Assembly: GCA_964304625.1 (NCBI GenBank)
Contig: OZ199840.1
Span: forward strand, 8,191,744-8,255,743
DNA from: Kudoa neothunni
Lineage: Eukaryota; Animalia; Cnidaria
Direction of reading: 5' to 3'
DNA length: 64,000 nt
The first letter of the stretch is position 1. Each line of letters starts with the position of its first letter. The position numbers were made by a program, and so were the translations under genes. This document shows positions 4,317 through 34,552 of this stretch, in pieces. A model generated the notes under the pieces. The model saw nothing but the letters and a program-made list of their open reading frames with translations. It did not search any database and was not told the origin of the DNA.

Positions 4317-7300
4317 TTATAAATGATGTGTTTCATTTTGATAAATGGAACAAAGCGATATTTGATATTTGTTTGAATTAGGAGAAAACGGCATTATGAT
4401 TATGAGGTAGGGGAGATACCCCCATTGGGATCCGGGATCGGGGACAGGAAGGGTTGATATCCTTCGAGAGTAAATTAGATTAATTTCATGTCAATTTGTT
4501 ATTTTTTTAACTGCTATATATGAACGAATTTAAACAAATCTATAATCCAAATGAAAAATTTCTTTAACATATATCGAGATATATTAATATCATTCCTTTG
4601 AAAAGGTTAAATTCTAGTGAAAAATTTATTAATTTTACAAATTTCATAATTATCTAGTAAAGCTTTTCTTTTCACATAATTGATAATTCGTAAAGAACGT
4701 AAGGAGAATTATCTGGTGATTAAAGGCCTCATTAATTAAATATTTTAAACGATGACATTTAGTAAGGTTGAAAATTACTTGGAGAATAAAATTGAATACC
4801 AAAATATAAAAAATCGTTATCACGCGTGCGTTAAATAAAAACCTATCAGACTTAAACGCCCTTATCTGATCATCAATAACCGCGCCAGTGTGGCCAAGCT
4901 AAACCTAGCAGATATTATACTCTCAAAGCATCAGTTCCACCATATTTTATATTTATAGCCTCTTGCAATATGGAAGACGAAGTGGAATTTTGAGAGCGTC
5001 GTAAACCATCCAGCAAGATTCCTTTGAATTCAAATATCATTCCAATCTGAACCAACAGCAGTATGACTTCATCAATACACTTCCATCGTTTATAAAATTC
5101 ATCAAATTGGAAATTGGGATCAGACAGACCTCTGATTCCCGCGGCAATGTGAGATTCTAGTGGAATCATGAGTTTCTATGGGGATAAGGGTAAAGAATAT
5201 GTAAAGAAAAATGAATTGTTACTTTAATTTCATCCATGGTTTCAACCACCATTTTCATCAATCTATCGCATGTAGCACTTACTCCAAAAACACCCATGAT
5301 AGACGCAAGTGCGATCATCTCTACAAAAAAATAAAAGTGAAAAATAAACCAAGTTCCATACGAGCATGGCTGAACACTCTCATATAAAATAACCACATGG
5401 TTTACTTTTAATGGTCTTAATTAAGAGAAATTAAGATTAAAATTTGTGTAATTTAAACGCTGCTAACTAATATAATTTAGAAAAATATGATATTGAATTT
5501 TTAAGGTTAGATTTCTTGGAGATCATTTTTATTCAACATTAATGACAACAAATATAAGTGTCTTTATAATCTAAGTCAATAGTTAAAATTTATAGATGAC
5601 AGGGGAATATAAATAATATTGTTGGACAGTTCATTTGAGCTAATCGATAGAATTATTCATACGCATGTGATTTTATTTTACATTGGCATAAGATTCCAAT
5701 GTATATAATGAAAAAATAATTTCATCGATATAATTAGATTTGAATTGGTTATCATGAAACTCAAAAGTATTTATTTAGGTCTATATTCACTGAGCACACA
5801 TGCTCAATTAAATTGAATTTTAATAAGAAAATACACGCAGCGCACATATTCAGAAAAGTTGTTAATCTACAACTTTGATAGCCTTTCTCAAGTCAAATAA
5901 TCGAATAAGAAAACAAGGGAGTGAGCGAAATAAAAAATGATGACGTACCTTGAACATCAGTATACTCTTCGATGGGTAAAGGACTGGACACTTTGACTAC
6001 AAAACATTTTCTCACGGGCGAAAACAACATTCCTTCGCTACGGCTTTTTTTACTCAGAATATTCTCTATATACCAATCGGAATAGATAGCGGTGAGAGTG
6101 ATATTTTCATCGGAAATTTCAGTCATCAAACTTTCCGCCAAAAGGATACCAGCAAAAATACGATTGAAATCACATTGAACTATTAATTTTACAATAAGAA
6201 GAGTGATAATTTTTGTTTCGGGCAGATAAAAATGACGACTTACGTAGATCACTCATCAGAGTTAAACCTTCATAGATAGATTTGAGCAACATAAGCACTG
6301 TACTGGGTTTTCGTATCTCATGCACACTTTCCAATCCATCCGGTGCTGGAAGATGAATTTGTTTTACAGTCTTTATAAGACTTTCTTCAACATTAGGAGC
6401 CATCCACATAGCTACATTAAACACCAATCCACCCAAGGTAATCTGAGGGAAACATCCAACCGAATTAGCCATATTCAAAAACATGTCCAATTCAAATAGA
6501 TCCTCTTCACTAATGAGAAAAAGATTCATAGCTCGGTTTTTGTGGCATTAACAACTGCACAATGACAAATTACCTTTGTGTTCCAAAATTGGTGATACGT
6601 TGAAGCAACTCATCCGAATAGCTGTGTGGCAATGGAAATACAAATCTCGCATTCTCCTGCACAGCAGGTGAATTGTTGATCCATATGAGTGACGTGGTGT
6701 AATCTCCCAAATTCATATATTGATACATCAGTGTTTGTAAAAGTGTGGAGAATGTGACAAACAATTTTGTCGATATCGATTCCATATAGTTGGATACCAT
6801 GGCAATGTGAAGTTCGTAAAACATTTGAATTTCTTGTGAGCCCACATAAGTGGACATGGGATCAAAGTGTTGAAGAGAGGTGGGAATCGATAACAAATAA
6901 TAAGACAACCCTGGTTCTACGTAAGCTTCACGAAAAACGGCTTCGATCAATTTATGGTGGAAACTACGAGTATCAAAAAATAAGATTATAATCTTGTATT
7001 TCACAGTTATATATTAATCAATAATTTGATTGTTTATTTAAAAATATAATTAACTGGATAAATTGTAAATTAAGAGGGGATCATGTTTGATTACTCTTAT
7101 TATTTTAAACAAAATTCAATAAGTTATGATATAAATTTGAAAATTTACAACACAACAGAGTCATGTGAGTTAAATCTATTTAATATAGGAATGATATATT
7201 AATTTGGAAAAAACACCCGTCCAATAAATGATTGATTATTTATTTAATTAATTAATTAATTAATTACACGATGGGGGTAATATCAAGATGACGTTGAAGA

Positions 7301-10300
7301 AAGCCGGTCACATCGTCAACAACAAGAGCGTGGAAAGCAAGGTTATTGAGAGTGGCAAGAGAATGGGTATATTTTGGAAGTGAGGAAACCGAGTTTTTGT
7401 CAATAACCTTTGCTTGAACACGAAGCCAGTCCACATACAATTTGAATACGCTCATGTCCTCTTTGATGCTTCCATACTCTAAAAATACAGTCAGCATCAT
7501 CGATGTATAACGCCAATCAAGTAGACGCAACAATGCAAATATTAACATACCAACTGGTGGAAGATTTTCTAAAAATTTAATATTTTCTTCGAAGCACACT
7601 TTTTCATAAGTAGAAAATTTGCCATTCTAAATCAAGATTTATTGTTGATATTGACGATGGAAATGGAAACTACTTCTGCAATATATTTCAATGCGTCTTT
7701 ATCGTGCCCGACCAAAAATTGATGGAAATAATTATGTACAATAAATTTATAGTTGGTAAACAGGTCTAAAGTTTAATAACAATTTTTTCAACAAATGTAC
7801 GTATCATATATTTACTTTTCAGTATGATAAGATAATGCAGGACTACACACAAATCTCTAAATAACAATAGTTCGAAATTAATAAAAGAATGAATGATGAT
7901 ACGGGTCGATAGGGACTTCCAGTTCCTTTTTTTTATTAACTCTGAAATTTTCCGGTAGCATCTGGACGGCGTAGAAGTTGAGTTCTGCCACTGCAGCCTT
8001 GTACAATGTCATCAGTTGGATAAACTAAAATCTCATTTCAAGAAGAGCAATCCAATTTTTGGAAATTGAAATTTTAAATAATTCGTCTACCCATTCTAAA
8101 ATTTGAATTTCGTTCGAAATACTATTTTTTAAAATAATTTCTAAAAGTATGGCGAAATTTCGTCGGCGCAAGCGGGGATATGGAAACATTTGAAAAATGA
8201 GCAATAGCGGGAATAAAAACTTTGTTATATTGAAAACAAAAGGATTATTCAACAAAAACATAATATTGGAAGTGGTAAAGTAGGAAGTGCTACGGAAGAT
8301 TAAGAACCCATCCCTCTGAAATTCGTAATATTGATAAAATCGGTTTCCATAACCATATTATATCCTCTGATAAAAGTATTGAACTGAAATTAGAAAATTT
8401 ATGTTTTTATTAAAATTTTTAAATGAGACAAATATTATTACTACGCTAACTTATTTTGATTTATAATTTTTTTAATTAAATACGTTACGCAAAGTCAAAA
8501 ATATGTTTAAAATATGCGGAGAAAAATTTATGTGAAATTCCATGTTATGTTGTGTAAAATTATTCATTGACAACTTTTTTTAATTAAAAATAATGTATAT
8601 TTTATTACTTTATTAGATTTTGATGTCAATAAAGTGTCTTTTTGATTAAATTTATATCTATATTAATTTTATTTTTGTTAAATAAACTATCTAACAAATT
8701 TATTTCGTCGATTATAAACAATATGACTGGTATATAGGGATAGTAAAAAAATATAGTTAGGATGTGCGAACTAGATTTAAATCGAAAATTGCATGCCCTA
8801 TTTATATTTAAATGAAACTCCTAATATTGTTCGAAATCCCGTTATTTAATAAAATTACTGAGACGTCGAAAGTTTACGACATACAAAAGTTTATCCCAAT
8901 TAAAACGAATTTCAATCCAACATCCATATCGACTTCATTGATATAAATATCAATTTTGTTTCGCAGGTGCGGATTTTGAGAAATAAATTTTACGATTTCA
9001 CCCCTCTCAATACATACAAAGTTTATTAAATGACATTTAATCGCTAATCTCTAATATTTAAGGCAGAATATAACTGAATAGACGTGGGGAGACAATGTTA
9101 CAAAACAATAATAAGGACTTAAAATTAAATACTTTAGGCCCAAGAAGACCAGGTTGATCTTGTATTAGAGGAACTGTTTCCATGAGGATATTTTTTATGT
9201 GTTGTCTTTTGTTACGATGGTTGATCATGCTAAATTATTGTTTTCATGCCCACTCTAGAACATAAAAAACTTACGTATTTCCAGGGCTGTTTTGATTATC
9301 ATTCACAAATTTGATCAATTTAGATGTGCTAAATTGATAACAAACAATTAGAAACAAATCAAATAAATTCAATGCAGAAATGGCGCAGTAATACGCATAT
9401 TCAAATGGTCCAATTACCCTTTTACACTTTCCAACCAATTCACAAGATCACGCTTAGCTTCAACAAATTCATCTTTGTGCACTTGAACCACCTCGAAGCT
9501 GGTAAGAATAAGTGATAGAATTCGTTCTAACGAGCTTCCAATTGTCACAGCGCTCGGGCAAATAACGATACAAACTAACCACCAATTACCACAAACCAAT
9601 CAATAAAACCTCGTACAATAAAACCATCTCAACAGTTCAAACCCAGAAACTAATTGAAGCATCGGCTACAATTAGCACATCAAATATCAAATAATCGATA
9701 ACAATTTTAACAATAGTTAAATAGTTACATAGTTGCATAATGGAGGAATGGCCAATTCATGTGAATTGGAAAGGATACTATAAGTGAACCCAGCTTTCAT
9801 CTAAATATCATTTGTCACAATGTTATGAGTGTGTGTATTCGCGTTATGTAGAATTACCTGTTCAGCATCAATACATTTGAGTTGTAATTCGGATAGTATT
9901 GATTCACCAATGGCTTGTAGTTTCTACAAAAATGGATATATACATTCGAGTTGATTTTAAAACACGCAATCGAATAAACAAAATTCAAATACAGGAACAA
10001 AATTTTCAAAATCCTCAACCAATCTTCGGAATGGCTTATTGGAGTAATCAGTAATAAATTGAGCAACTCCAAGGAAACTTGGTTCACTAAACACAATAAA
10101 AAAATACTACCGAATCAATTCGATAATTACGGTCTCTTATTGACCTCTTCGAAAGCAGCAGCATACAAACCAACAACTGATTTCACATCTTCAATTTTCG
10201 TGAAGAAAAAAAACGAACACACATAATTGGACACAAGTTCCAATATCATAAGCAAAATATCATTGGATAATTTCTATTTGATAAGAATAAAAATAAGCAT

Positions 10301-10872
10301 ATGCAAAATATGTATTTAGAGATAAATATCTAAAAAAGCTACCAGCGTTATTGTATTTATTATTTGTCCAAGAGCTAACATAAGTGTGTTGATTAGCAAC
10401 TAAAATTTAAATATAATCAAGAATTCGAATTCATCAACAACAACAACAACAACAATATCTACCCTAAATTTACCCAAATACACAAAACCATTGTAATAGA
10501 TATCCAATGATTGTAGTATTTCGGTAGGTTTTGGATCTACATCTTTATTTTTCATCTACAAAAATTTTCGATGAACGTGGTTATTTTTCTGTTATAAATG
10601 TGGTATCAATCAAATACAGCAGAGTTTTGCAAAACCGGAAATTTTCTGCACACACTTTTGCATAATGCGTCCACTCCTTTATGCTTCATTATAGCTGGCC
10701 GGATCTATAAATGTACACATGTGTGTGTGAGAATGTTGACAAATTATCTGCCATAACGATTGATTACTTTCTTGCACAGGTACATATCGTTTATGAGGGT
10801 TCTAGATGCCTGCACCATAACATACAATGTCTCACCAAATCTAGGTGATACATATTCCAGATTTAGAGACAT
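4317..10872 (-). CDS. NCKAP1: Nck-associated protein 1 (Nap1/Hem/Kette; WAVE regulatory complex), >20 exons; 3' end uncertain
   Basis: The manual splice product is colinear with NCKAP1: VCRKFP, EILQSLDIYY, KIEDVKSVVGLY, QDQPGLLGPK (diagnostic), VDWLRVQA, YSDWYIENIL, IEEYTDVQ/EMIALASIMG, IDEVILLLVQIGMIFEF. A ~1.1 kb phase-0 intron lies at about 8025-9132. Confidence 0.88.
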
Positions 10873-10902
10873 GTTTATTGTGCGAGAGAATAGATTTTTT
10901 CA

Positions 10903-13900
10903 CTAGCGATTGACTTAGTTGAAAATTAGTATTAGAATCTAATACGACCAACCTGATAATTCTTTAAGTGCTTGCGCATATGCTACTTAAAGATTAACGT
11001 TGTTTGGTTGATGAGATGGGTTTGTGTGTGAGTACCCTCATCCCTTAGCGAGTCACCTGCCCTACTGTATACACCGCTTTTCCATATATCAGCCTCTGTG
11101 ATGGTTGGGAACTGTTGTAAAATGTTTTACACGCGGTTATCAATCAATTTATTGCATTCAATCAATTATTATATTATGTACTGGTAATAACCATAATCAC
11201 CACTATCAATAGCTGTCGTTGGTCAACTGAAATAATTTTAATCCATATTATCACGTCAATAATAATCCATTATATTTTAAATTGATATTTTGTACTAAAA
11301 AAATGTGTTACCATGCTATAGACAAGCATGAGAAATGAAAAGACGATCGTAAGTTTAACCTCATAATTAACACAATTGGATTCTACAAGTTCAATAATGT
11401 AATCGAAATCTGATTAGTCCACTATGTAAATAACAAACGGGGCCCTATTCTTAGTAACCAATAGGATTAATCCTTCGAGTGGATAGATCCAAGAGGATTA
11501 TCAATATCGGATTAATGTTTACGTTGATTTCTATCAAATTGTAAATAATTGTTTTCAACTATCTTAGGGTTTTTTGCGATAATTTTTTTGCGTTTTAAAA
11601 TTTGAATCCCCGAATTGTAATCAATTCAAACAAACATTGCACTTTCGTGTATTCGCTCGGGTTCGTGTTTTCACGAATTAAATACCATGCCCAAGTTTTG
11701 GCACAAAACACAACGAAATTTATTTTAAATACAAATTTCAGGCACGAATCGCTAATGAAATCATATCCATGGGTTTCGTAGGGGAGGTTTAATTTTTGAG
11801 ATATATCGAAATTGTGTCTCCGTAAATTTTATTTTTATATTAGTAATAAACTGATCCTTAAGAAAACAATAACATAGATTTTACGCTATTTACACTACGA
11901 AATTGTATTTTTAATAATTTTTCTCAATCAGAATTATATATTATGCTCAAATCGATCCAGTTGATTCTAGAACGTATAAATTTATTATCACCATTTCTAA
12001 AAATCGTGAACGTGATGAAAAATGTAATGCGTGATGTCGACAGATTTAAACCTCAAAATAATGGGATTTCCTATGAATAGAAACTTCTAATGCTGGTTAC
12101 TACATAATTAATTTTATAATTTGATGGGAGCATGATTATTATGAGTTCGTCTTTCAAAAAATGTTTTTAATATGTGTTTATTTTATTTAAAACCACAAAA
12201 ATATAGCTTAACGATCTATTGCATTTCATACAAATAATAAAGTTGAATTGGGAGAGTTTTCCTCCATCTTTGGTAAATATGGATTGAAAATTCTCTCATA
12301 ATTTGATCTTACTGCTAGACATCTTCCACAAGTAGAGAGCACCATTATCTAAACTTTTTTCACATCGTTAATATTCGAGGAATTCATCTCGAATATAGGT
12401 TTAAAAATAGGAGTGTCGAGACTATTGAATATTCGAAATCGAAAATACTTACATTGAGAAATCTCTTAAAACAACTCCAAAAATACGCTAATCCATTAAA
12501 TTAACCTATTTAAGTTTATATACGTATTTTTTACTTACGCAATAAAATAGTTTTTTGTAAAAATATTAAATCAGATCAAATATAAATTTCTACAATCCAT
12601 AAGTATCCCAAAAAATTAGGACAACTATATGAAGTTTACCATGCAACATTGTAGTTTAATGCCAGTTTTATTCCACTTTTTTTTTCTTTAATTCAGCTTT
12701 TTATAAAAGAAGAATTGAAAAATTAATTGATAATAAATTTTTTTACATATTTGCATTGAAGCGAGATTAAAAAGCTGATCATTTGGTTACTATAAAAATT
12801 TGATGATAAAAGGATTTTAATTCCTTTTAATGCAAATAAATTGTCACCTAAAAAATATATAAACTAAAAAATGAATGGATTGATTAATTAATTAATTAAT
12901 TGGAATTGTTTTGTAAAGAGTTGATAGTAGATATATAAGTAATGACATAGAAGATAATTTTTTATTATTAAATGTGTGAAAAGCTTACTTAAATGGCCGA
13001 ATCATATAATTTTGAAAACTAAACATTATTAAAAAATTTATTAAGACATATAATTAATTTAGAAGTTAATGGAGGAATAATAGAGTGAGTTTTCATTGGT
13101 TTTCCGAAACTTAACGAAGATTTTACTAGTGCCGATGATGTATTCGGGATTTGGCGGCAAAATTCTAAGTTATAACAATTAGTCGAATCCTTGCTTTAGT
13201 TATTCATCTATTTAATTATGAGCAATCGCTTATGACTAGGTAAAAATAACGTTCAAAAGGCCGTTTTTATATTCTCAATCCAACTTTATTACTTGATCAA
13301 GAACGCAATTACTTCAATTTTAACAAACACCTACTAACTAAATTAACTAACTTAAATGGTTATCATATATTTTTAAGAAATCTAATTAAAATATTTACTA
13401 TAAACAAAGTACAGTTATAGCAAATGAAATTCCAAGCGTTAGTTCAACTCTGTAAATTCATACATATACCCTCAATAGAGCAACCAAAAAGTCCCATTTT
13501 AAGGAAAAAGTATCTCGATACCCCATTTTTTAAAGGATTAATTTCAAACTGTCATGGTGGCACAAACACGAACGAAAGTACATTGTCTGAATTCAAGTAG
13601 TCTAATTCTTAATTAATTCCGAAGATGTGCGAAATCTTGTAATTTCCAATTTAATGTAATATATTACAACTGACATTTTTTTAATCTATAAAAAACATGT
13701 AAATAATTTATGGCTTGTTAAGCTTGCTGTAGCAGACTTAAATGAGGATAACTTCCAATATTTATGTCCGCGCTCGGGGCGAAAGAACACAATCAATGAA
13801 AGTCGATGATAAATTTAAAAACAGTTGTAACCTCGTTATTAATTTAAATAATCTGATTAATTCAATTTCAAAATATTTTTCTGAAAATGATATTAGAAAC

Positions 13901-21232: not shown

Positions 21233-24200
21233 TCATTTGTATATGGAGATACTAACAGTGCTGTTATTGATCTAAACATAATGTCACAATATGTGACCAA
21301 GTTAATAAAAAATAGCATACCATTTCGGAGCAGTCGATAATCTTGGTGGGTAGTTGATTATAATCGGCATCAACCAACACTGGCATCTTTACCTGTTCAT
21401 TAACGTAGGCAAGATGCTGATTTAGCATACTGACACATTCAGAATCTCCCCAACACACAATAACAATATCATCAGTTGGTTGAACATTAGCCTAATGCAA
21501 CAATAACATAGTCAAATAAAATAGAAATGAACTTGTTCAAGAAAAATTATTACCTTTTTTCGAAGTTTCTGTATACGATTAACAATTTCACGAGCAATTG
21601 ACTGATCCAATAATTCTTGATTTTGTGTGATATCCAACAGCACAACTACTTCACCATCCGAGTGGGCAGAATATTTTTGGTCTCCTTTTTTTACCGAGAA
21701 TATCAACTTCACATCATCACGTTGTAAATTCTGTCCAGACACATTGATAACGGAGTTTGGGTTTTGTATGGTTTCAATGTCGTCGATAGTGAGTTTTGAA
21801 AGAGCAACTTTGATATCATTAATTTGGCCGCGTAAACGATCTCCCAATTGTTGGAAGTTGGGTACCACTCTACATTCTACTCCGTAATTTTTCATATCGC
21901 AGGACAATGTGAGTTTCATTATATTTAAGTCTTCTAGAATGTAGGTTTCCATGGTTTTAATGTTATCTAAGAATTTAGGGTTGGAATGGAGTACAACAAG
22001 CTCGTTCAATGGCATCTACCACCAATCAATCATAATTCAACAAAGCAGTATTAGATTTACTTTCAAAGGAAGAGTGTTTCGTTCACGCACAACTCGAGCT
22101 AAATTAACCACAGCTTGCATATTTTCGACAGTGACCTCTACCGACTTGTCAATAAAGTCTAACCTAGGTTGAGGTAGCATTTGGAAGTGCACGCTAGCAT
22201 TGTAGTGGCATTGTTGGTTGGTTGCATTGCCATTAATGATTGAATTTTCACGTTTCTCGTCGAATTGAACAAGATTTTGGTATATGTATTCAGTGAAAAA
22301 TGGCACAAAAGGAGAAAACATTTTCACCATGCTATATTGGACATTGAATAGTGTTGCCAAGGCGATCTCTTGTTCTGCTAGTCCTTTATCACCCTACACG
22401 TCAATTAGAATAAATTTTTATCTCATACGACTTCACAGACTGATTCGATTCACTCATAAAATCATATACCTTGAGACGCTTACGATTGAATCGTATGTAC
22501 CATTTGGTGAGATTATCGAGGAATTCTATAATCTTTGGAACCACAGTGTACAATCGATAGCATTTCATCTCCTGGTGAATAAACCCAATCAACGATTGTG
22601 TGTAGGAGATGATCCATTGATCCATGAAATTGGTTAAATTTTGAATATGTTTATCTTGGTAGGCGTAGCTGTTGATGTCGATATCATTCTGGAAAACAGA
22701 ATTTTAGAGTTAATCTTTTTAACTAAACGAAAAAACAAATGGACGAATAATACCTGCTTACAGTAGAGTGCAGTACTTTGCATGAGATATCGAAAAGAGT
22801 TGTACCACGGAAGAAGCATTTCTTTGACCAAATTTCGAACACCACTCTCTTGGAATTTAAGCGATTCCCCTCTGACAACTGGCGAATTGATCAGATAAAT
22901 TCTTAGCACATCTGAGCCGTATTTGTTGATCACTTCAAGTGGATCGGGATAGTTTTGCTTGCGTTTACTCATTTTTTGGCCATCACTAAAGCAAAAAATC
23001 AAAGTTACATATTGATATGTAACCAAATAATATTGGATACCTAGCAAGCACCAACCCATTAGCAATAAGATTTTTGAATGGTGGCTTGTCGAAAAGTGAT
23101 GTCGACAGCACCAGAAGTGTGTAAAACCAACCACGAGTTTGATCGATACCTTCTGCAATAAAATCGGCGGGAAATCCCTCATCAAATACATCTTTATTCT
23201 CGAATGGATAATGTATTTGAGCGTAGGGCATACTGCCACTCTCGAACCAGCAATCAAACACTTCCGGAACACGTCTTAAAAACGAGCCGGGTTTGGTGGT
23301 GGACGGAATGAGTATATCGTCGACAGATTCACGATGCAAATCAGTCACTTTGACTCCACTTAGTTGCTCCAATTCTTCGACGGAACCAACACAAATAATC
23401 TCAGTGAAATCTTCATTGGTCCATAGTGGAATGGGAGTACCCCAATAACGATTTCTAGAAATGTTCCAGTCACGGGCATTTTCGAGCCAATTATGAAAGC
23501 GTTTAGTTTTTACAAATTCAGGCACCCTACACAACATTTTCAGAGTTGGAGATAGATATTCATATAATGAAGTTGGGAATCAATTTACCAATTGGTTTCA
23601 CTGTTATTGGCCAACAATCGTGGAATCAAATCTGTCACCTTGACAAACCAACTAGGAACAATACGATACATGAGAGGTGTATCGGATCGCCAGCAAAATG
23701 GATAGTTATGACTAATCGTACCATCACTGAAAATTCGACCATTATTTTTTAGAGTTTTTATAATGAGTTTATCAGTATCCTATATAAATAAACATATACA
23801 ACTCAATATTTTCCATAGTCAAACAGCTCCCCACCTTGAAATACATGCCTGCAAATTCAGGAATTTCTGTAGTGAAATGACCTGTCACATCAATAGGACA
23901 AGGCACCACATTTGTATTTTGATAAATGCCATTCGCAATACACACCCTGTAATCATCCTCTCCAAATGCGGGAGCAGATTGAACTACACCAGTACCATCG
24001 TCCTCGGAAACATAAGAGTCACCTAGAACCTTAAAAGCGCCATTTTCTCTCCACTACAATCAATTTTAATATTTGGTGAAATTTTAGGTATAAAGCGGTA
24101 CTGTGGAGAAATATTCAAAACATGGAATATATGCCTTGCCCAAAAGTTGATCTCCGGTAAACCTTTAACCACTAGTAACAACAATAACATCAAAAAATTA

Positions 24201-25217
24201 GAGAATGACTTTTCGAGAACAACACAAGGTTTCTTCTTTCCAAAGTATGCAGCCATTCGAGCTTCCATAAGAATGTATTTCTTTTTGGTTTTAGTTTCTT
24301 CAATTTTAACGTAGGTGGATTTGGGATTGACTACAAGTGAAAGGTTGCTAACCAATGTCCATGGAGTAGTGGTCCATGCTAAAAATGAAACACTCGGATC
24401 TTCTTCCAAAGGAAAGCACACAGTGATAGAAGGGTCAGCAACTTCTTTATAATTTTGATTGGCTTCAAAATTTGAAAGCGGAGTGTTGCATGCAGTCGAA
24501 TAGGGCATAACACGATAACCGTAATAGATTCGATCTTTCATGTACAACTGCTTACACACCCACCACACTGATTCCATAAATGTGGGATACATAGTTTTGT
24601 AATCCCTATCGAAATCTATCCAGCGTCCCAAACGCGTTACAATATTCTAAATTTGAGGTTGTTTATTTTACAAACTAGACACATCTAGTTGAAAAAACAA
24701 AAATCTACTCTCCATTCGGATGAATATCGATTCACTATTGCACGACATTCATTGTTGTAACCAATAATACCAATTTTTTTTATATCGTCTGGACCTTTGA
24801 TACCTAATTTCTTGTCAATTTCGTGCTCCACTGGTAACCCATGACAATCCCAACCAAAACGACGCTCAACATAATGCCCCGTTTGGTGTGCATATCGAGT
24901 CACAGTATCCTTATTGATTCAAATGGTAATCCAACATTAACTCACCGTAACAACTAAATTACTTTGATTGTTCCAGCCAATATGTGTCCATAATGAGGAA
25001 GTCCTGTAGCGAATGGAGGTCCATCATAAAAAGTAAATCTAATATTGAAATTTTAAGATCTAAAGGTTATCAACTGTTACCTTTTTTTGCCTTCTGATTG
25101 TTTTAATGATGTTCGAAATGCATCAATCTCCTCCCAATACTTGAGCACTATCTGCTCGTTATCAGGAAAATCAAACATGTCGGGAAGGTTGTTGAAATTT
25201 TTCAAATTCGTCGACAT
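21233..25217 (-). CDS. IARS1: Isoleucyl-tRNA synthetase, cytosolic, about 15 exons
   Basis: [16 protein letters not shown] (HIGH motif), [73 protein letters not shown] (KMSKS). All introns are ~40-65 nt GT-AG; ends SISIYK*. Confidence 0.97.
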
Positions 25218-28029: not shown

Positions 28030-28171
28030 TTCATTACACACCTATCATAACATTCTTTCGTTCCAATACGTTCGCTCGATTTATGTAATACATACATCCT
28101 AAGACTTGAGCGTGACAAATAAGATTCTGATGGATTATCACGATTTCACCTTAGCGAATACGTATTATTAA

Positions 28172-28973
28172 CCCTTAATAGGTGGTGACCTTGAGCTCGA
28201 CGAGACCAGCCGGATTAATTTCTATCCTTTATTGGATTTTATTTTAAGCTGTATTTGCTAACTTTAATACATTATTGCGTGATAAAAAATGTGATATACA
28301 ATAAATAATTTATTTTGTGGGACACTCAAACAATTAAAAAATTGTTTTATTGAATGCTCGTTACATATACTGTTGTTACACACACCGCGTACTTGTTTGT
28401 CCCGCCTTATGATACGTGTCGAACATAAACTAAATTGTTTGCGATCATTTGTATTTTTATTTTCCATAAATGACGAATTATTCTCATTGAATTGGAACCT
28501 AACTGCTTCAAGAGAAAGCTTAAAGGCCGGTTAACTTACAGTTTTTTGGGTCTTCAGCTCTTCATTTCTGGTAGCTGCTTACAAGCAAAAAAAGCGGATA
28601 AATCCACTCAAAATTATTGTCGGCGATTAAGTTTGTCTTTCAATGTTCCAAAATTCTTTGAAAAAACACGGTAAATAAATTAAAACCAGCAAAATCAATA
28701 ATTTTTCAGTAGATAATTGATTTGAGAAATTCAAACATTACACTGATACACCCATTGCGCAATTGTACAATTACCTTTAAATAAAATAAAGCATATTGTT
28801 ATTGTCATAATCCTTTTTTGGTGAATATCGGCTTAACCTAAAAAAGTTCGAATTCATTTAAAATTTACAACTAGATATAAAATAAAATAATAAAAAACAT
28901 TTTTTGAATTAATTATGCTCAATTTACTACTCAGATGAGCTCGTGGAGCCTAAGGTCACCTACCCATTAAGGG
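28172..28973 (-). mobile_element. piggyBac internal-deletion derivative (~800 bp)
   Basis: TTAA target duplications; ~35-bp TIRs CCCTTAATAGGTGGTGACCTTGAGCTCGACGAG and CCCTTAATGGGTAGGTGACCTTAGGCTCCACGAG; internal RKQFSLCS...VCNNSICNEHS resembles the piggyBac C-terminal Cys-rich domain. Confidence 0.85.
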
Positions 28974-30517
28974 TTAATACTAGAAAATGATTATCAATAT
29001 AGTGAATACCATTAATGTATCATTAGTTTTTACTATATTTAATTATTCTTGGCCCTATGTGCGAAGCGGTGGGCAGGAATAATTAAATCCGTATGCAGTT
29101 TGCGAGTAAGAGTCTTTAGAATTAAAAATTGTAATTACGAAAATGTACATGCCTTTTAAGGTTAAAATATATCATGAAAATAGTCTCTATTCTAATTTTA
29201 TTTAAAAATGTAGGATTAATGTTCAGGCGGACCATGATCATTAGTCGGTAAACGTGATTACTGTTTTGCAGTTTTATAAAATTTTGATTAATGGACTTAT
29301 AATTAATTCATTTGAAGGAGTTTATAAAAACAGAAACAACCACCTAGTTAGAAGGAACTTAAGAAAATCACTTTTAATTAATCAAATTATTACCCCTCTA
29401 ACCTGTACAAACTAGGTACCCTTTATATTAGAGAAAAATTAAGCAACCCATAAATGTCGATCAAAATAACTTGAATAATTAGATTAAATAAAAGCACAAC
29501 ATCTCTATCGAATTTAATTGTTATGATTGCATCTTAACGTCGACCTAATTAAATTTAAGATCACAGTTCTAATATTATAAAGCTTCAATCTACTTGAATA
29601 TAACATACATTATCAATTTATCATTAATTAAGCAGATTTAAATCTTTTTATTGCATTAAAACCGTTAATAGAAAGTTCAAAATGTCCTATCAAAATGAAT
29701 ATACTAATAAGTCCCTGTATAAGGAGTGTATTTGTGCACATCATAAAAAGATATACATAATTTATATATACAGATGGACGATAATATTCAATTAATTTTC
29801 GTATGTAAACAGAATTTTAACTTCAACTCTTTATCACCTTCAAATAAGCGACCTTAGTTTTGTTGTATGAATGCTAATCCCATAGTAAAGTTTAAAACCT
29901 GTTGCTTTAATTTTAATCCCACAGCTGAATCCTATAATCCGTTTAGACAAATTTATACCCTATAAATTCAATATTTTCTAAATAATTCCGGCGCCATTTA
30001 TAATACGATGACAAAAGAAAGATTTATTTTCAATATTTTTAGCCATTAAAAGTTACACAAATATCTATCTATAAGGGAAAAAATTTGTCGCACATGAGTA
30101 GGTGTGGACACACACACGGCCTCTAATATTTTATATATGTAGTAGGTAGATAATGGTAACAAAGAGAGTTAGACCATTCATTAGAGATATAATTCCAAAC
30201 AAATTAGCTGTCTTGTAATGACGCAACACTGTCACCGCTGACTTCGTAATATTACACCGGAGATTTGCATAATTTACTTATCAGTTTTTTGTTTCTTCGG
30301 AAAAATATTAATCACGAACATAGCTGAGCGAAAAGAAACATTAGCTTATTGGATGAAAAGCTTACAATAGAATATCCACACAAAGTAGATTATATTACAA
30401 AAATCGTAATTCTATTTAAAAACAGCAGAACAAAAGTTCCGAATTATCCTTTTTAATTTAAAACTGACCAAACTGAATCTCCTAGCATATCTAATCTACA
30501 CAACAATAAGACGTATT

Positions 30518-31548
30518 ATGTCTATTCATTGTAGATTTGTACTTGGTGACATCATGAGCAATCCAAATCGCATTATCAAACTATTAGTTTTCTGCAAGAA
30601 ATATTTTAAAAATAAGGTCATTTTCCTTCATTCCTACGTTACACTAAAAGCATTTATCGCTCTGTTACCTATGTTGTTATTTTACGCCGGATACGGTCTT
30701 TACAAGCCCATATATTGCAGTATGTTTCATTTTCCTGATGCGACCTTCAATGACACAGGTGTATACGACCATTATCCATTTTTGGATATGTCTGAAAGAT
30801 TCGACCGTTTGTTTTTTGAGAAAGCATTCCATCGGATTCTACAAAGCCCGAAATGTTTGGTGCTTGATTTTCTAGCGATGATTCCTTATTTGCTGCATGG
30901 TTTTGTTTTTGTTATATGCTCATTGAGGTATGCCTGCTGTCGGAAAACAAATCCATATTTTTTTGCTTTTGTCAATATTTGTGGATATTCCACGTTGGTA
31001 ATGCTGATTTTCCAATACTTTGTGCCTGTGGCTCCCCCTTGGTTTGTAGAAAACTATTACGAGAAATTCAATTCATCCATGGTATACAAACTACAGTGTA
31101 GTTCACCCAACCAATATTCATCGTGTAAGTGAAATTTTGTTTCATCGATATTCAAATGCTACAAGTAGACATGGATACGAGAATAATGGCCGGAAATTTT
31201 TACAACATTGATAAATTAACCGGTTTCTGGGTTTTTCAATATATTTACACCCATTCGGTTATATTGTTTGGTGCTCTGCCTTCGATGCACGTTGGTTTGG
31301 CATTATCCGTATTGGAGACCGAACATCTTAGCTCACAACCAAACCAATTCGCCTCCATATATTCCATTTGGATGATATGGGCCGCAATCTATTCCAATCA
31401 TCATTACGTTCTGGATGTTATGTTAGCGGCTATTATTGTACGTGCTACATCTTTATTATTTTGTTATTTTAATGGATGGGATATTAAACCAAATGTAAAA
31501 TCTCATTCAAATGAAAGTTCTATATCAAATAATGTAGCTACTGTTTAG
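30518..31548 (+). CDS. AUR1-like inositol phosphorylceramide synthase (PAP2_3 family membrane phosphotransferase); start uncertain (30518, 30553 or an upstream exon)
   Basis: Two ORFs are joined by a 44-nt intron at 31125-31168 (gtaagt...gtag). Motifs VLDFLAMIPY, FVPVAPPWF, NIDKLTG, VILFGALPSMHVG and YSNHHYVLD parallel yeast Aur1 FLDILAWLPY, PAAPPWY, RIDKLLG, VIFGAFPSLHSG and YLTHHYFVD. Confidence 0.85.
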
Positions 31549-32228
31549 TTGGACGTTTTTATTTTAGATTCGTTTAATTTCTCTAGCTGTACGCATAAAC
31601 GATACAATTAAAAAATGTCAAATTTTCTGACCTTATAAATCTAAATTTATGGCATGTTAAAATGAGATTATTATTAAACAAGGTTAATTTGAATTAATTA
31701 AAATTGATGGCTGGATTTGATAAGACCTATCTCTACCTAATTTAGTCGAACCGGCCTCCTGCTTATGCACCCAAAAATATATACAGTTAGTTTACGTCGA
31801 TGACTATTAATTCTTCCGGTTAAAACGCAGGACGGTGTTATATTTATGCTGTAATTTTTGCGAGTGATGACTTATTTTCATTCAATATATCATTCTTGAT
31901 ATTATGGTTGTGCATTTGCTAAAATTGAACACCTGATGCTTACACAGAATACGATTCTTTTTTTTATACACAGATTTAACAATAGGCAATCGCTAAGGAT
32001 GAAATATGGCAATCCAATAGGATTAGAGTCGCCCGACTTAAATTGTACAACACATAAAACACGCTTTACTTGAGCCAACTTAATCGGTGGTATAGCCTGT
32101 CGAAATAATCGCGAAGGACTAGGAGTTCTCTATATTAATAGATTAGTACAAATGCTACTGTGATGACAAATAGCGGTTGCTGAAAGTACCCTACTGATGA
32201 TGCAACGCGGATCAGTACTCATTATTAA

Positions 32229-34552
32229 CTCATTCAGGTTCCATATAATAGAAGTTGACTATTTCTCAACATAAAAATTATGTTGTTATAATAAAAACAT
32301 AATTAAAATATTTTTTCAAAAAAATTATTATATGAGCGAAAAACCAAGTTTTAAGGTTGTGTCGTAAGTGACACGCAAAACCCCCCAGCTATCGCATGTG
32401 CAAAAATAAATTATTATATTTTAATTATAACATTTTATATATTATTTGTAATGTTAACAAACATTTTGGATGTAATCGGGTAGAACATCCACTACAATAA
32501 TATATAGTCAAGTTATGATATACCGCACACCTCAATCTTTTACGTGTTGGGTCATCTGTAATAATGGAATTTTGGCATATATCTTTCATTATTTTATTTG
32601 CCAAAGATGGTTTTCTAACACCTAATGTAGATTTACGTACCGTAATTAGACATGAGGTTATTTCTCGTGTGTGTTGTAATAAATCTATGGAGCTTTCGTC
32701 ATAAGTGGTAATAATTCTCCACGAGTTGACGACGCTCATAAATATTAAATTGGTAAATAATGCTCAATACCATTTTTTACCCCTAATAGAAATGTGATAG
32801 TTAGCAATGTTATTGCCTGCTAGATCTACACCACCCATGCATTTGTTGTAGGCATAAATCATATGTGGCTAGAATATAGAAATTTGTTTTTTTTTCTATT
32901 TTCGAAACTCTCTTAATTGTCATTAATGGTTGGCACGAAAGATAATTGCTAATAACGGTGACTGGTTTGGTGTCATTCCACTGAACATAAACAATTCCGT
33001 TTCCATCAGTAAATTCTTCATATTCGCCTCTTTTATTTGTAGAAAAAATGTTTGATTGGTGTACGTGGACATTTTTCAGTTCTATTAATACGAATTGTAT
33101 CAGCCGCCCTTAAGTTTTTGTCTATCAGCGCTTTCGGTAGTTTGAAGGACGAAAAAAAATTGTCGAAATATAATTCAATTCCAGAAGAATCACTAATTAC
33201 ATCAACGAATTTCATGACTACATTGGCGCCAAGTCCCAACGAATTATCCACGATTTCACCTTTTCCAGTGTATACCTTAAAACTGTAAATATATCCACCT
33301 GAACTGGTCATTACCCAAATTTTAAAGCCAAATCGAATTGGCTTCATTTTTTATAAACATTTATGAAGAATGTAAACAAAAATATGGAACCATTTTCCCG
33401 TCAATAGAAATAGCTTCATTAAATTCCAAATTTTTTAAAATTTTACATTTAATTTGTCGATGAGAAGCCTTAATTTAGCCATTTTATCGCTTCTACCTAA
33501 AACATCGTTATCAGAAAAATGGATATATTTTTTTATCTAGTTGAAACGTTTTATAGGCATTGCTCTTTTCACGATTTCAACGCCAGAATAAATCGAAGTC
33601 TTCCAATACATTTTTTGTCTTGGTAACTCTTGATATCCAAATAGGATAAATATGCCAATAAATGTTCTCATTTCCACAGCCGTTGTGTGGGAATTATGGT
33701 TGTTGTTCTGCCGCGCGTAGAGATCGTTAGACGCACGTGTGTTCTTATATTATCAACCAGGAAGCACCCAAAAGTCTCGTATTAACCTAAACTGAATAAA
33801 AATTAAGTGGTTATATGGTTTAAGGTGGAACCTTTATAGAGATCATCCATTACGAGAGCCTTGCAACTATTATGACTAGAAAACGTTTCTTTTGAAACAT
33901 TTTTTCCTCCCATGTCATTTTTGTTGATGTTAATTCCTTTATATTGTGTAAGGAATCTGGTCTAAAGATCTCGACTTGGCCCGCACTGTCCACCTCATTT
34001 AAAACTTCGCAGTTGTCATAGTTGAAGTCATGGATGTTATCTTCTACAGCAGTGACTTCGTCAACATTTTCTGTTGGTAAAATGACAATATCGGTACATT
34101 CATCAGGGCCATATTCATCAATTGGATCGATAGCATCGCTTAGTCTAACAAATATCTCGATACTCATGGTAGAGGATTAGGGATCCTTGTGGGTTTTGCG
34201 TGTCGTTTACGACACGCAACCAATTAATAATTTTCTCAGAGTTTGCACGTTTAAAACTTTTCTTAATAATTTCTCATACTTCTGTTATCAATAGTAATTT
34301 AAAAATAGAATTAAATTAAAGTTTGCCGAATTTGTGTATACTTATTGCTGGTGTAACTGGTTGGTAGTGCGCATTTCCTTAACACCATCTTATTTCAAAA
34401 ATTTAAGTATAAGTAAAAATTTAATTTTTTGGAATTGATAATAATAAATGAATGATAATCAGTATAAACAAATAATAATTATAGAATTAAAGTTGAACGC
34501 TACATGACTGAAATAGTGACGTGTGGTTTACGACACGCAAAACCCGAATGGG
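32229..34552 (-). mobile_element. Full-length piggyBac transposon with pseudogenised PGBD3-like transposase
   Basis: TTAA flanks at 32225 and 34553; TIRs CTCATTCAGGTT and CCCATTCGGGTT; repeated GTGTCGT(T/A)..CGACACGC palindromes; transposase motifs KPIRFGFKIW, LYFDNFFSS, YNKCMGGVDL and a C-terminal Cys-rich domain, interrupted by frameshifts. Confidence 0.92.

Follow-up and report, generated by a model that had tools for sequence, protein, structure and literature searches.

In the literature on inositol phosphorylceramide (IPC) synthases, the Aur1 type of enzyme is called fungal-specific or absent from mammals. An AUR1-like gene in the genome of Kudoa neothunni raises the question of whether it is an intact member of this family, how it came to reside in an animal genome and what its product does. 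The initial annotation of the 64,000-nt stretch of DNA analysed here (the window) described the gene as fungal-type and offered two explanations of its origin, i.e., an ancient gene retained in an early-branching animal lineage or a domesticated horizontal transfer.

Gene structure, family membership and genomic neighbourhood

The AUR1-like gene is localized on the plus strand and consists of two exons, giving 328 codons in frame with zero internal stops. The ORF starts with the ATG at 30518 (a further in-frame ATG of exon 1 is found at 30554), and its TAG stop codon ends at 31548. The particular features are as follows (D117 and APPW were located by a motif check):

30518..31124, plus strand: exon 1, 607 nt; residues 1-202 and the first base of a split codon
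30866, plus strand: D117 (in LDFLAMIPY)
30896..30901, plus strand: His127-Gly128, equivalent to Aur1 H157-F158 (aureobasidin contacts), with F158 replaced by Gly
31031, plus strand: APPW
31125..31168, plus strand: intron, 44 nt, GT...AG, phase 1
31169..31548, plus strand: exon 2, 380 nt; residues 203-328 and the stop; catalytic half with FGALPSMH and NHHYVLD
31204..31206, plus strand: Asn215, replacing the Arg of the IPCS2 R-x-D motif
31288..31290, plus strand: His243 (in FGALPSMH), equivalent to yeast Aur1 H255, the C2 catalytic His
31402..31416, plus strand: His281-x3-Asp285 (in NHHYVLD; H281 at 31402, D285 at 31414), equivalent to Aur1 H294/D298, the C3 motif

The uninterrupted two-exon ORF with a 44-nt intron, as first described, was confirmed, and the blocks named at that time (LDFLAMIPY, APPW, IDKLTG, FGALPSMH, and NHHYVLD) were all found in the translated exons. 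Exon 1, which corresponds approximately to TM3-TM5 of Aur1, carries IPCS1-like D117/Y124/H127 as well as APPW. Splicing of the 31125-31168 intron is predicted on the basis of the reading frame and of two other species that have an intron at this position; searches, alignments and trees were all made with the two exons taken separately. Positions 29736-31999 are covered by an independent contig from short reads (2266 nt), which showed zero substitutions and zero coding-region indels versus the assembly. Moreover, the gene is present at single-copy depth in the short reads, and its GC and GC3 are like those of the neighbour genes. Upstream of the coding region, short-read contigs differ from the assembly by single-base insertions at 29543 and 30300, which suggests small assembly errors.

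The gene belongs to the Aur1/Ipt1 family (PAP2_3). In the search with the Pfam PAP2_3 model (PF14378), exon 2 scored 31 bits (curated cut-off 27), while exon 1 scored 19 bits against an earlier part of the profile, the order of the exons being correct. The sole matches of exon 2 in the PDB were yeast AUR1 (E 1.5e-8). Residues H243, H281, and D285 align with yeast H255, H294, and D298, each of which is essential in Aur1 (PMC13133130), so both the family assignment and the intact His-His-Asp triad proposed at the outset were upheld. Beyond the triad, equivalents of S253, H293, H157, and Y153 of Saccharomyces cerevisiae Aur1 (PDB 9vj3, 9ivc), also a PAP2_3 protein, are present in the window protein, and a holozoan profile matches the yeast enzyme at E 9e-35. 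The latter differs, however, in its longer N-terminus, in its need for Kei1 (not found here), and in having W-x2-Y-x3-H-x3-P, R-x-D and F158. The fungal IPCS1 motif, D-h-h-n-W-x2-Y-x3-H-x3-P, is only partly recognizable in the window protein, with D, Y, and H kept, W replaced by M, P replaced by F and the spacing reading Y-x2-H; the IPCS2 motif, Y-x3-G-x3-G-L-x-R-x-D, reads AGNFYNID, its Arg corresponding to Asn215. The holozoan profile recovered one locus only in the genome.

Two other candidates were considered and rejected. Assignment to the sphingomyelin synthase (SMS) family (PAP2_C) gave only 15 bits, and the PLPD and CGD-x3-SGH combination was not found in the window protein. A second PAP2_3 match in the genome turned out to be a PAP2 phosphatase and not an AUR1-like paralogue.

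The host genome (40.3 Mb in 4 contigs) is compact and AT-rich, and the gene is localized on an 11-Mb contig. Approximately 230 kb upstream, the same contig bears minicollagens with Cys-rich domains, polyproline and Gly-X-Y repeats, which identify the host as a cnidarian, in agreement with the animal host assumed earlier. The compactness and AT-richness of the genome, the shortness of the intron and its recurrence at the same place in Thelohanellus kitauei suggest that this cnidarian is most likely a myxozoan. As for the metazoan neighbours that had been named, the Rho GTPase and (weakly) NCKAP1 were recovered with Pfam, while TMEM198 and DMAP1 were not confirmed. An extra neighbour, a multi-exon isoleucyl-tRNA synthetase gene (IleRS; Pfam), was found at 21512-24631 (minus strand). 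At 32359-34545 (minus strand), 0.8 kb downstream of the AUR1-like gene, there is a decayed piggyBac transposon (DDE_Tnp_1_7) with frameshifts and stops and with inverted repeats at 32359-32388, 34186-34225, and 34511-34545; it showed no sign of having carried the AUR1-like gene. Paired inverted repeats at 28163-28204 and 28940-28982, with read depth raised over 28667-29000, probably delimit a short non-autonomous DNA transposon.

Relatives and origin of the gene

A first search for homologous proteins with exon 1 alone gave none; relatives were found with the full HMMER search and with profile searches. When 1.84 billion proteins were searched with exon 1 by phmmer, four matches were obtained, i.e., an orthologue from SRR33849685 (48% identity), Syssomonas multiformis, the annelid Dimorphilus gyrociliatus, and Thelohanellus kitauei, and no fungal protein was among them. 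Profile searches extended this set to more than 100 close relatives, including those of cnidarians (Hydra, Hydractinia, Nematostella, Acropora, and Porites), the sponge Sycon, two crinoids (Anneissia and Antedon) and, among unicellular holozoans, Chromosphaera and three species of Salpingoeca. Conservation of the family across cnidarians is good, and in Hydra, Nematostella, and Dimorphilus the genes are intron-containing loci on large contigs.

The proteins of Hydra (XP_002157325.2), Nematostella (XP_001631068.1), an Acropora digitifera-type coral (XP_015773967.1), Anneissia (XP_033126660.1), Sycon (XP_065188127.1), and Dimorphilus (CAD5117266.1) fall in the same clade as the window gene. Animal and holozoan members share with it the Y-x2-H spacing, the WAAxYSNHHY motif and a size of about 310-350 residues. 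Among themselves they are 40-50% alike, and they differ from the window gene in their introns and in keeping the loop Glu/Arg, H-F and H-x3-P. The Dimorphilus protein has a natural Tyr at the F158 position, and its gene lies about 3 kb from that of ORMDL, a sphingolipid regulator (locus positions 6601-7171 and 10001-11522), possibly by chance.

Several of the animal relatives are already annotated in RefSeq/UniProt as IPC synthase AUR1-like. Broad presence across animals (Porifera, Cnidaria, Annelida, and Echinodermata), named beforehand as one circumstance that would refute the initial interpretation, was indeed found; the accompanying one, prior characterisation, was not, as our literature search yielded no biochemical or functional study of any animal member and no paper on the phylogeny of the animal AUR1-like clade or on its presence across early-branching animals.

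The closest counterparts of the window gene are two other myxozoan-type loci, in which exon 1 is followed, at the same place, by a phase-1 intron and then by a second exon with the catalytic motifs. Both the SRR33849685 gene and T. kitauei KII63129.1 (RF11_09530; intron of 21 nt) also share with the window gene the triad and the loss of the loop Arg/Glu. The T. kitauei protein, which is far more divergent, retains H-x3-P, and a Tyr stands at its F158 position. The public model of KII63129.1 is annotated as 160 aa, i.e., exon 1 only, and looks truncated, judging from the 21-nt intron and the second exon with the catalytic triad that follow in JWZT01004771.1 (10001-10849 of the locus). The window-gene intron position is absent from Hydra, Nematostella, and Dimorphilus, and the window gene lacks two N-terminal introns common to Hydra and Nematostella; intron position thus ties the myxozoans together and not to free-living cnidarians.

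At equal search size, exon 2 scored 54 bits against Hydra versus 38 bits against yeast Aur1, and exon 1 scored 45 bits against Hydra, with no yeast match at E<1. The Y-x2-H spacing was present in all 164 proteins of the holozoan set, myxozoan ones included, versus Y-x3-H in fungi. At diagnostic columns, where holozoans and one fungal sequence differ, the window gene is holozoan-type in 17 and fungal-type in five. In maximum-likelihood trees (IQ-TREE), which included one fungal sequence only, fragmentary exon rows and very long myxozoan branches, all myxozoan exon rows were placed within the holozoan clade (99/99 and 92/99), apart from the fungus and bacteria. In a larger tree exon 1 was nested in Medusozoa (95/98), a nesting that was gone with fewer taxa.

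Taken together, the window gene in all likelihood descends vertically from a holozoan ancestor, and this is the simplest reading because free-living cnidarians carry the gene. The suggestion of an ancient gene retained in early-branching animals therefore holds, with relatives in four animal phyla, while the label "fungal-type" has to be abandoned, the closest relatives being animal and holozoan. Transfer from a fungus to the myxozoan lineage, with the intron gained later, would account for the missing N-terminal introns, and the AU tests, the power of which is low because only one row was fungal, rows were fragmentary and branches were long, did not reject a grouping of myxozoa with the fungus (p 0.096 and 0.139). 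Such a transfer is nevertheless very improbable: best matches, scores, the indel, diagnostic sites and both trees point to Holozoa, and it is unnecessary given the free-living cnidarian genes, so the domesticated-transfer explanation was not supported. Even less probable, and largely refuted, is that the locus is a contaminant or a misassembly. Repeats and the decayed piggyBac flank the gene, yet the contig bears minicollagens, an independent contig covers the gene with its flanks, and same-intron orthologues occur in two other species.

Under vertical descent, an Aur1/Ipt1-family gene of the holozoan ancestor would have been kept in sponges, cnidarians, and some bilaterians; vertebrates and the standard model animals, by established knowledge, have lost it. 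The window gene is most likely a divergent addition to a known family, inherited rather than transferred.

Predicted activity and the remodelled loop

On balance, we consider the gene a single-copy myxozoan orthologue of the holozoan Aur1/Ipt1-family gene, the product of which would most likely be a phosphatidylinositol (PI):ceramide phosphoinositol transferase. By the chemistry of the family, the protein would be a multi-pass membrane lipid phosphotransferase, and it is very probably active. His281, activated by Asp285, would attack the phosphate of a donor phospholipid, with release of diacylglycerol and formation of a phospho-His intermediate, and His243 would then activate the 1-OH of ceramide, the head-group acceptor. 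The likeliest donor is PI and the likeliest product IPC, a specificity that we regard as probable with less assurance than activity itself; IPC would be made without a Kei1 subunit and beside two SMS-family enzymes.

The genome contains a PI-synthase-like gene and a strong match to INO1, i.e., myo-inositol-1-phosphate synthase (E 6e-56, contig C1, 13.912 Mb), which suggests that the parasite keeps de novo inositol synthesis. The search for KEI1 and SMS homologues proposed in the initial annotation revealed two SMS-family genes (contig C1, about 9.418 Mb, and contig C3, about 7.822 Mb), both with intact CGD-x3-SGH and H-x3-D, the C3 copy being more divergent; KEI1 (PF08552) had no match in the genome in an exon-wise search of limited sensitivity, run with no positive control. 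The genome search for ceramide synthase was blank, and its control was likewise blank. Furthermore, two equal-scoring copies of a CDP-alcohol phosphotransferase (cardiolipin-synthase-like) were found 16 kb apart on contig C2 (5.640 and 5.656 Mb), representing either a recent tandem duplication or an assembly duplicate; the 5.640 Mb copy adjoins an inositol-monophosphatase-family gene.

Two known examples bear on this prediction. Dictyostelium CSS2 has been described as closer to fungal Aur1 than to SMS and is active as an IPC synthase by cell-free expression alone (PMC11402645). Like the window gene, with which it was compared by description only, DdCSS2 is non-fungal and Aur1-related, and it is a biochemically shown IPC synthase; it differs in being amoebozoan and is resistant to 500 uM aureobasidin A. 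The second example comes from crinoids. The feather star Comanthus japonica is presumably the species now called Anneissia japonica, which has an AUR1-like gene; a taxonomy look-up gave no confirmation of this synonymy. Glycosyl-IPC gangliosides have been published from feather stars, including C. japonica, according to references listed in PMC4393008. These lipids are counted in favour of IPC synthesis because crinoids carry an AUR1-like gene.

A putative head-group-binding luminal loop, located downstream of APPW and before the C2 His, comprises 59 residues in the window protein versus 44 in most of its kin. It lacks the near-invariant Glu and Arg of E-AGF-x-R-x-D, found in 166 and 165 of 168 holozoan-type proteins, respectively, and both residues were lost in all three myxozoan-type copies. 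In addition, the window gene and its closest relative no longer have the H-x3-P kink. According to docking, the inositol pocket lies in the TM5-TM6/EL3 region, where the loop is found (PMC12122681, PMC13133130). These changes favour a reading in which the gene is of vertical origin and the myxozoan enzyme has changed its donor or acceptor specificity, for instance to the transfer of phosphoethanolamine or phosphocholine, to an acceptor of the Ipt1 kind or to the activity of a lipid phosphatase. We consider such a change rather unlikely, since SM/CPE-type synthesis is already provided for by the two SMS-family genes, whose triads are intact, the myxozoan proteins are very divergent in general, and no published mutation of the loop Arg was found in the literature. 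More remote still is the idea that the product of the Aur1-like family in animals is ceramide aminoethylphosphonate (CAEP), the main cnidarian phosphonosphingolipid. CAEP is abundant in cnidarians (PMC8708635), across which the family is well conserved, and no named CAEP synthase was found in the literature. However, PEP mutase, with which aminoethylphosphonate synthesis begins, had no match in the genome with two models (exon-wise blanks being suggestive only), while INO1 is kept; molluscs are CAEP-rich, yet no named mollusc was among the matches, the sampling of which is incomplete. The CAEP product suggested initially is thus disfavoured in this host. It is worth mentioning that free-living cnidarians are phosphonolipid-rich, and the blank result for PEP mutase may point to a loss of phosphonate synthesis in the parasite.

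Implications for the parasite and for the enzyme family

Selective inhibition of the enzyme, put forward at the start for a parasite of vertebrates, has a precedent: mras18 of Myxobolus sp., which matches IPC synthase (CHEMBL1641343) and has no fish homologue, is among three drug-target candidates (bioRxiv 10.1101/2024.02.09.579586). The preprint mentions it in a single line, as a BLAST match and with neither phylogeny nor function, and orthology of mras18 with the window gene is presumed. Of the two contacts that anchor aureobasidin, the H157 equivalent is kept (His127), while the F158 equivalent is Gly128, so that sensitivity to aureobasidin A should not be assumed and appears doubtful for the predicted enzyme.

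These results reduce the surprise of the locus, since fungal transfer is unneeded and a myxozoan match to IPC synthase is already in a preprint. Interest remains moderate, as the predicted function of the animal branch is easy to assay. A broader proposal, which we advance as speculative, is that an unrecognised IPC synthase, independent of Kei1, is present in animals from sponges to crinoids and explains the crinoid IPC lipids, and that the myxozoan copy, with its remodelled loop, is essential, absent from fish and a selective target. For the synthesis of IPC-core lipids in some invertebrates the gene is a concrete, testable candidate, and in fish pathogens of this group, against which few treatments exist, its product is plausibly a parasite-specific enzyme.
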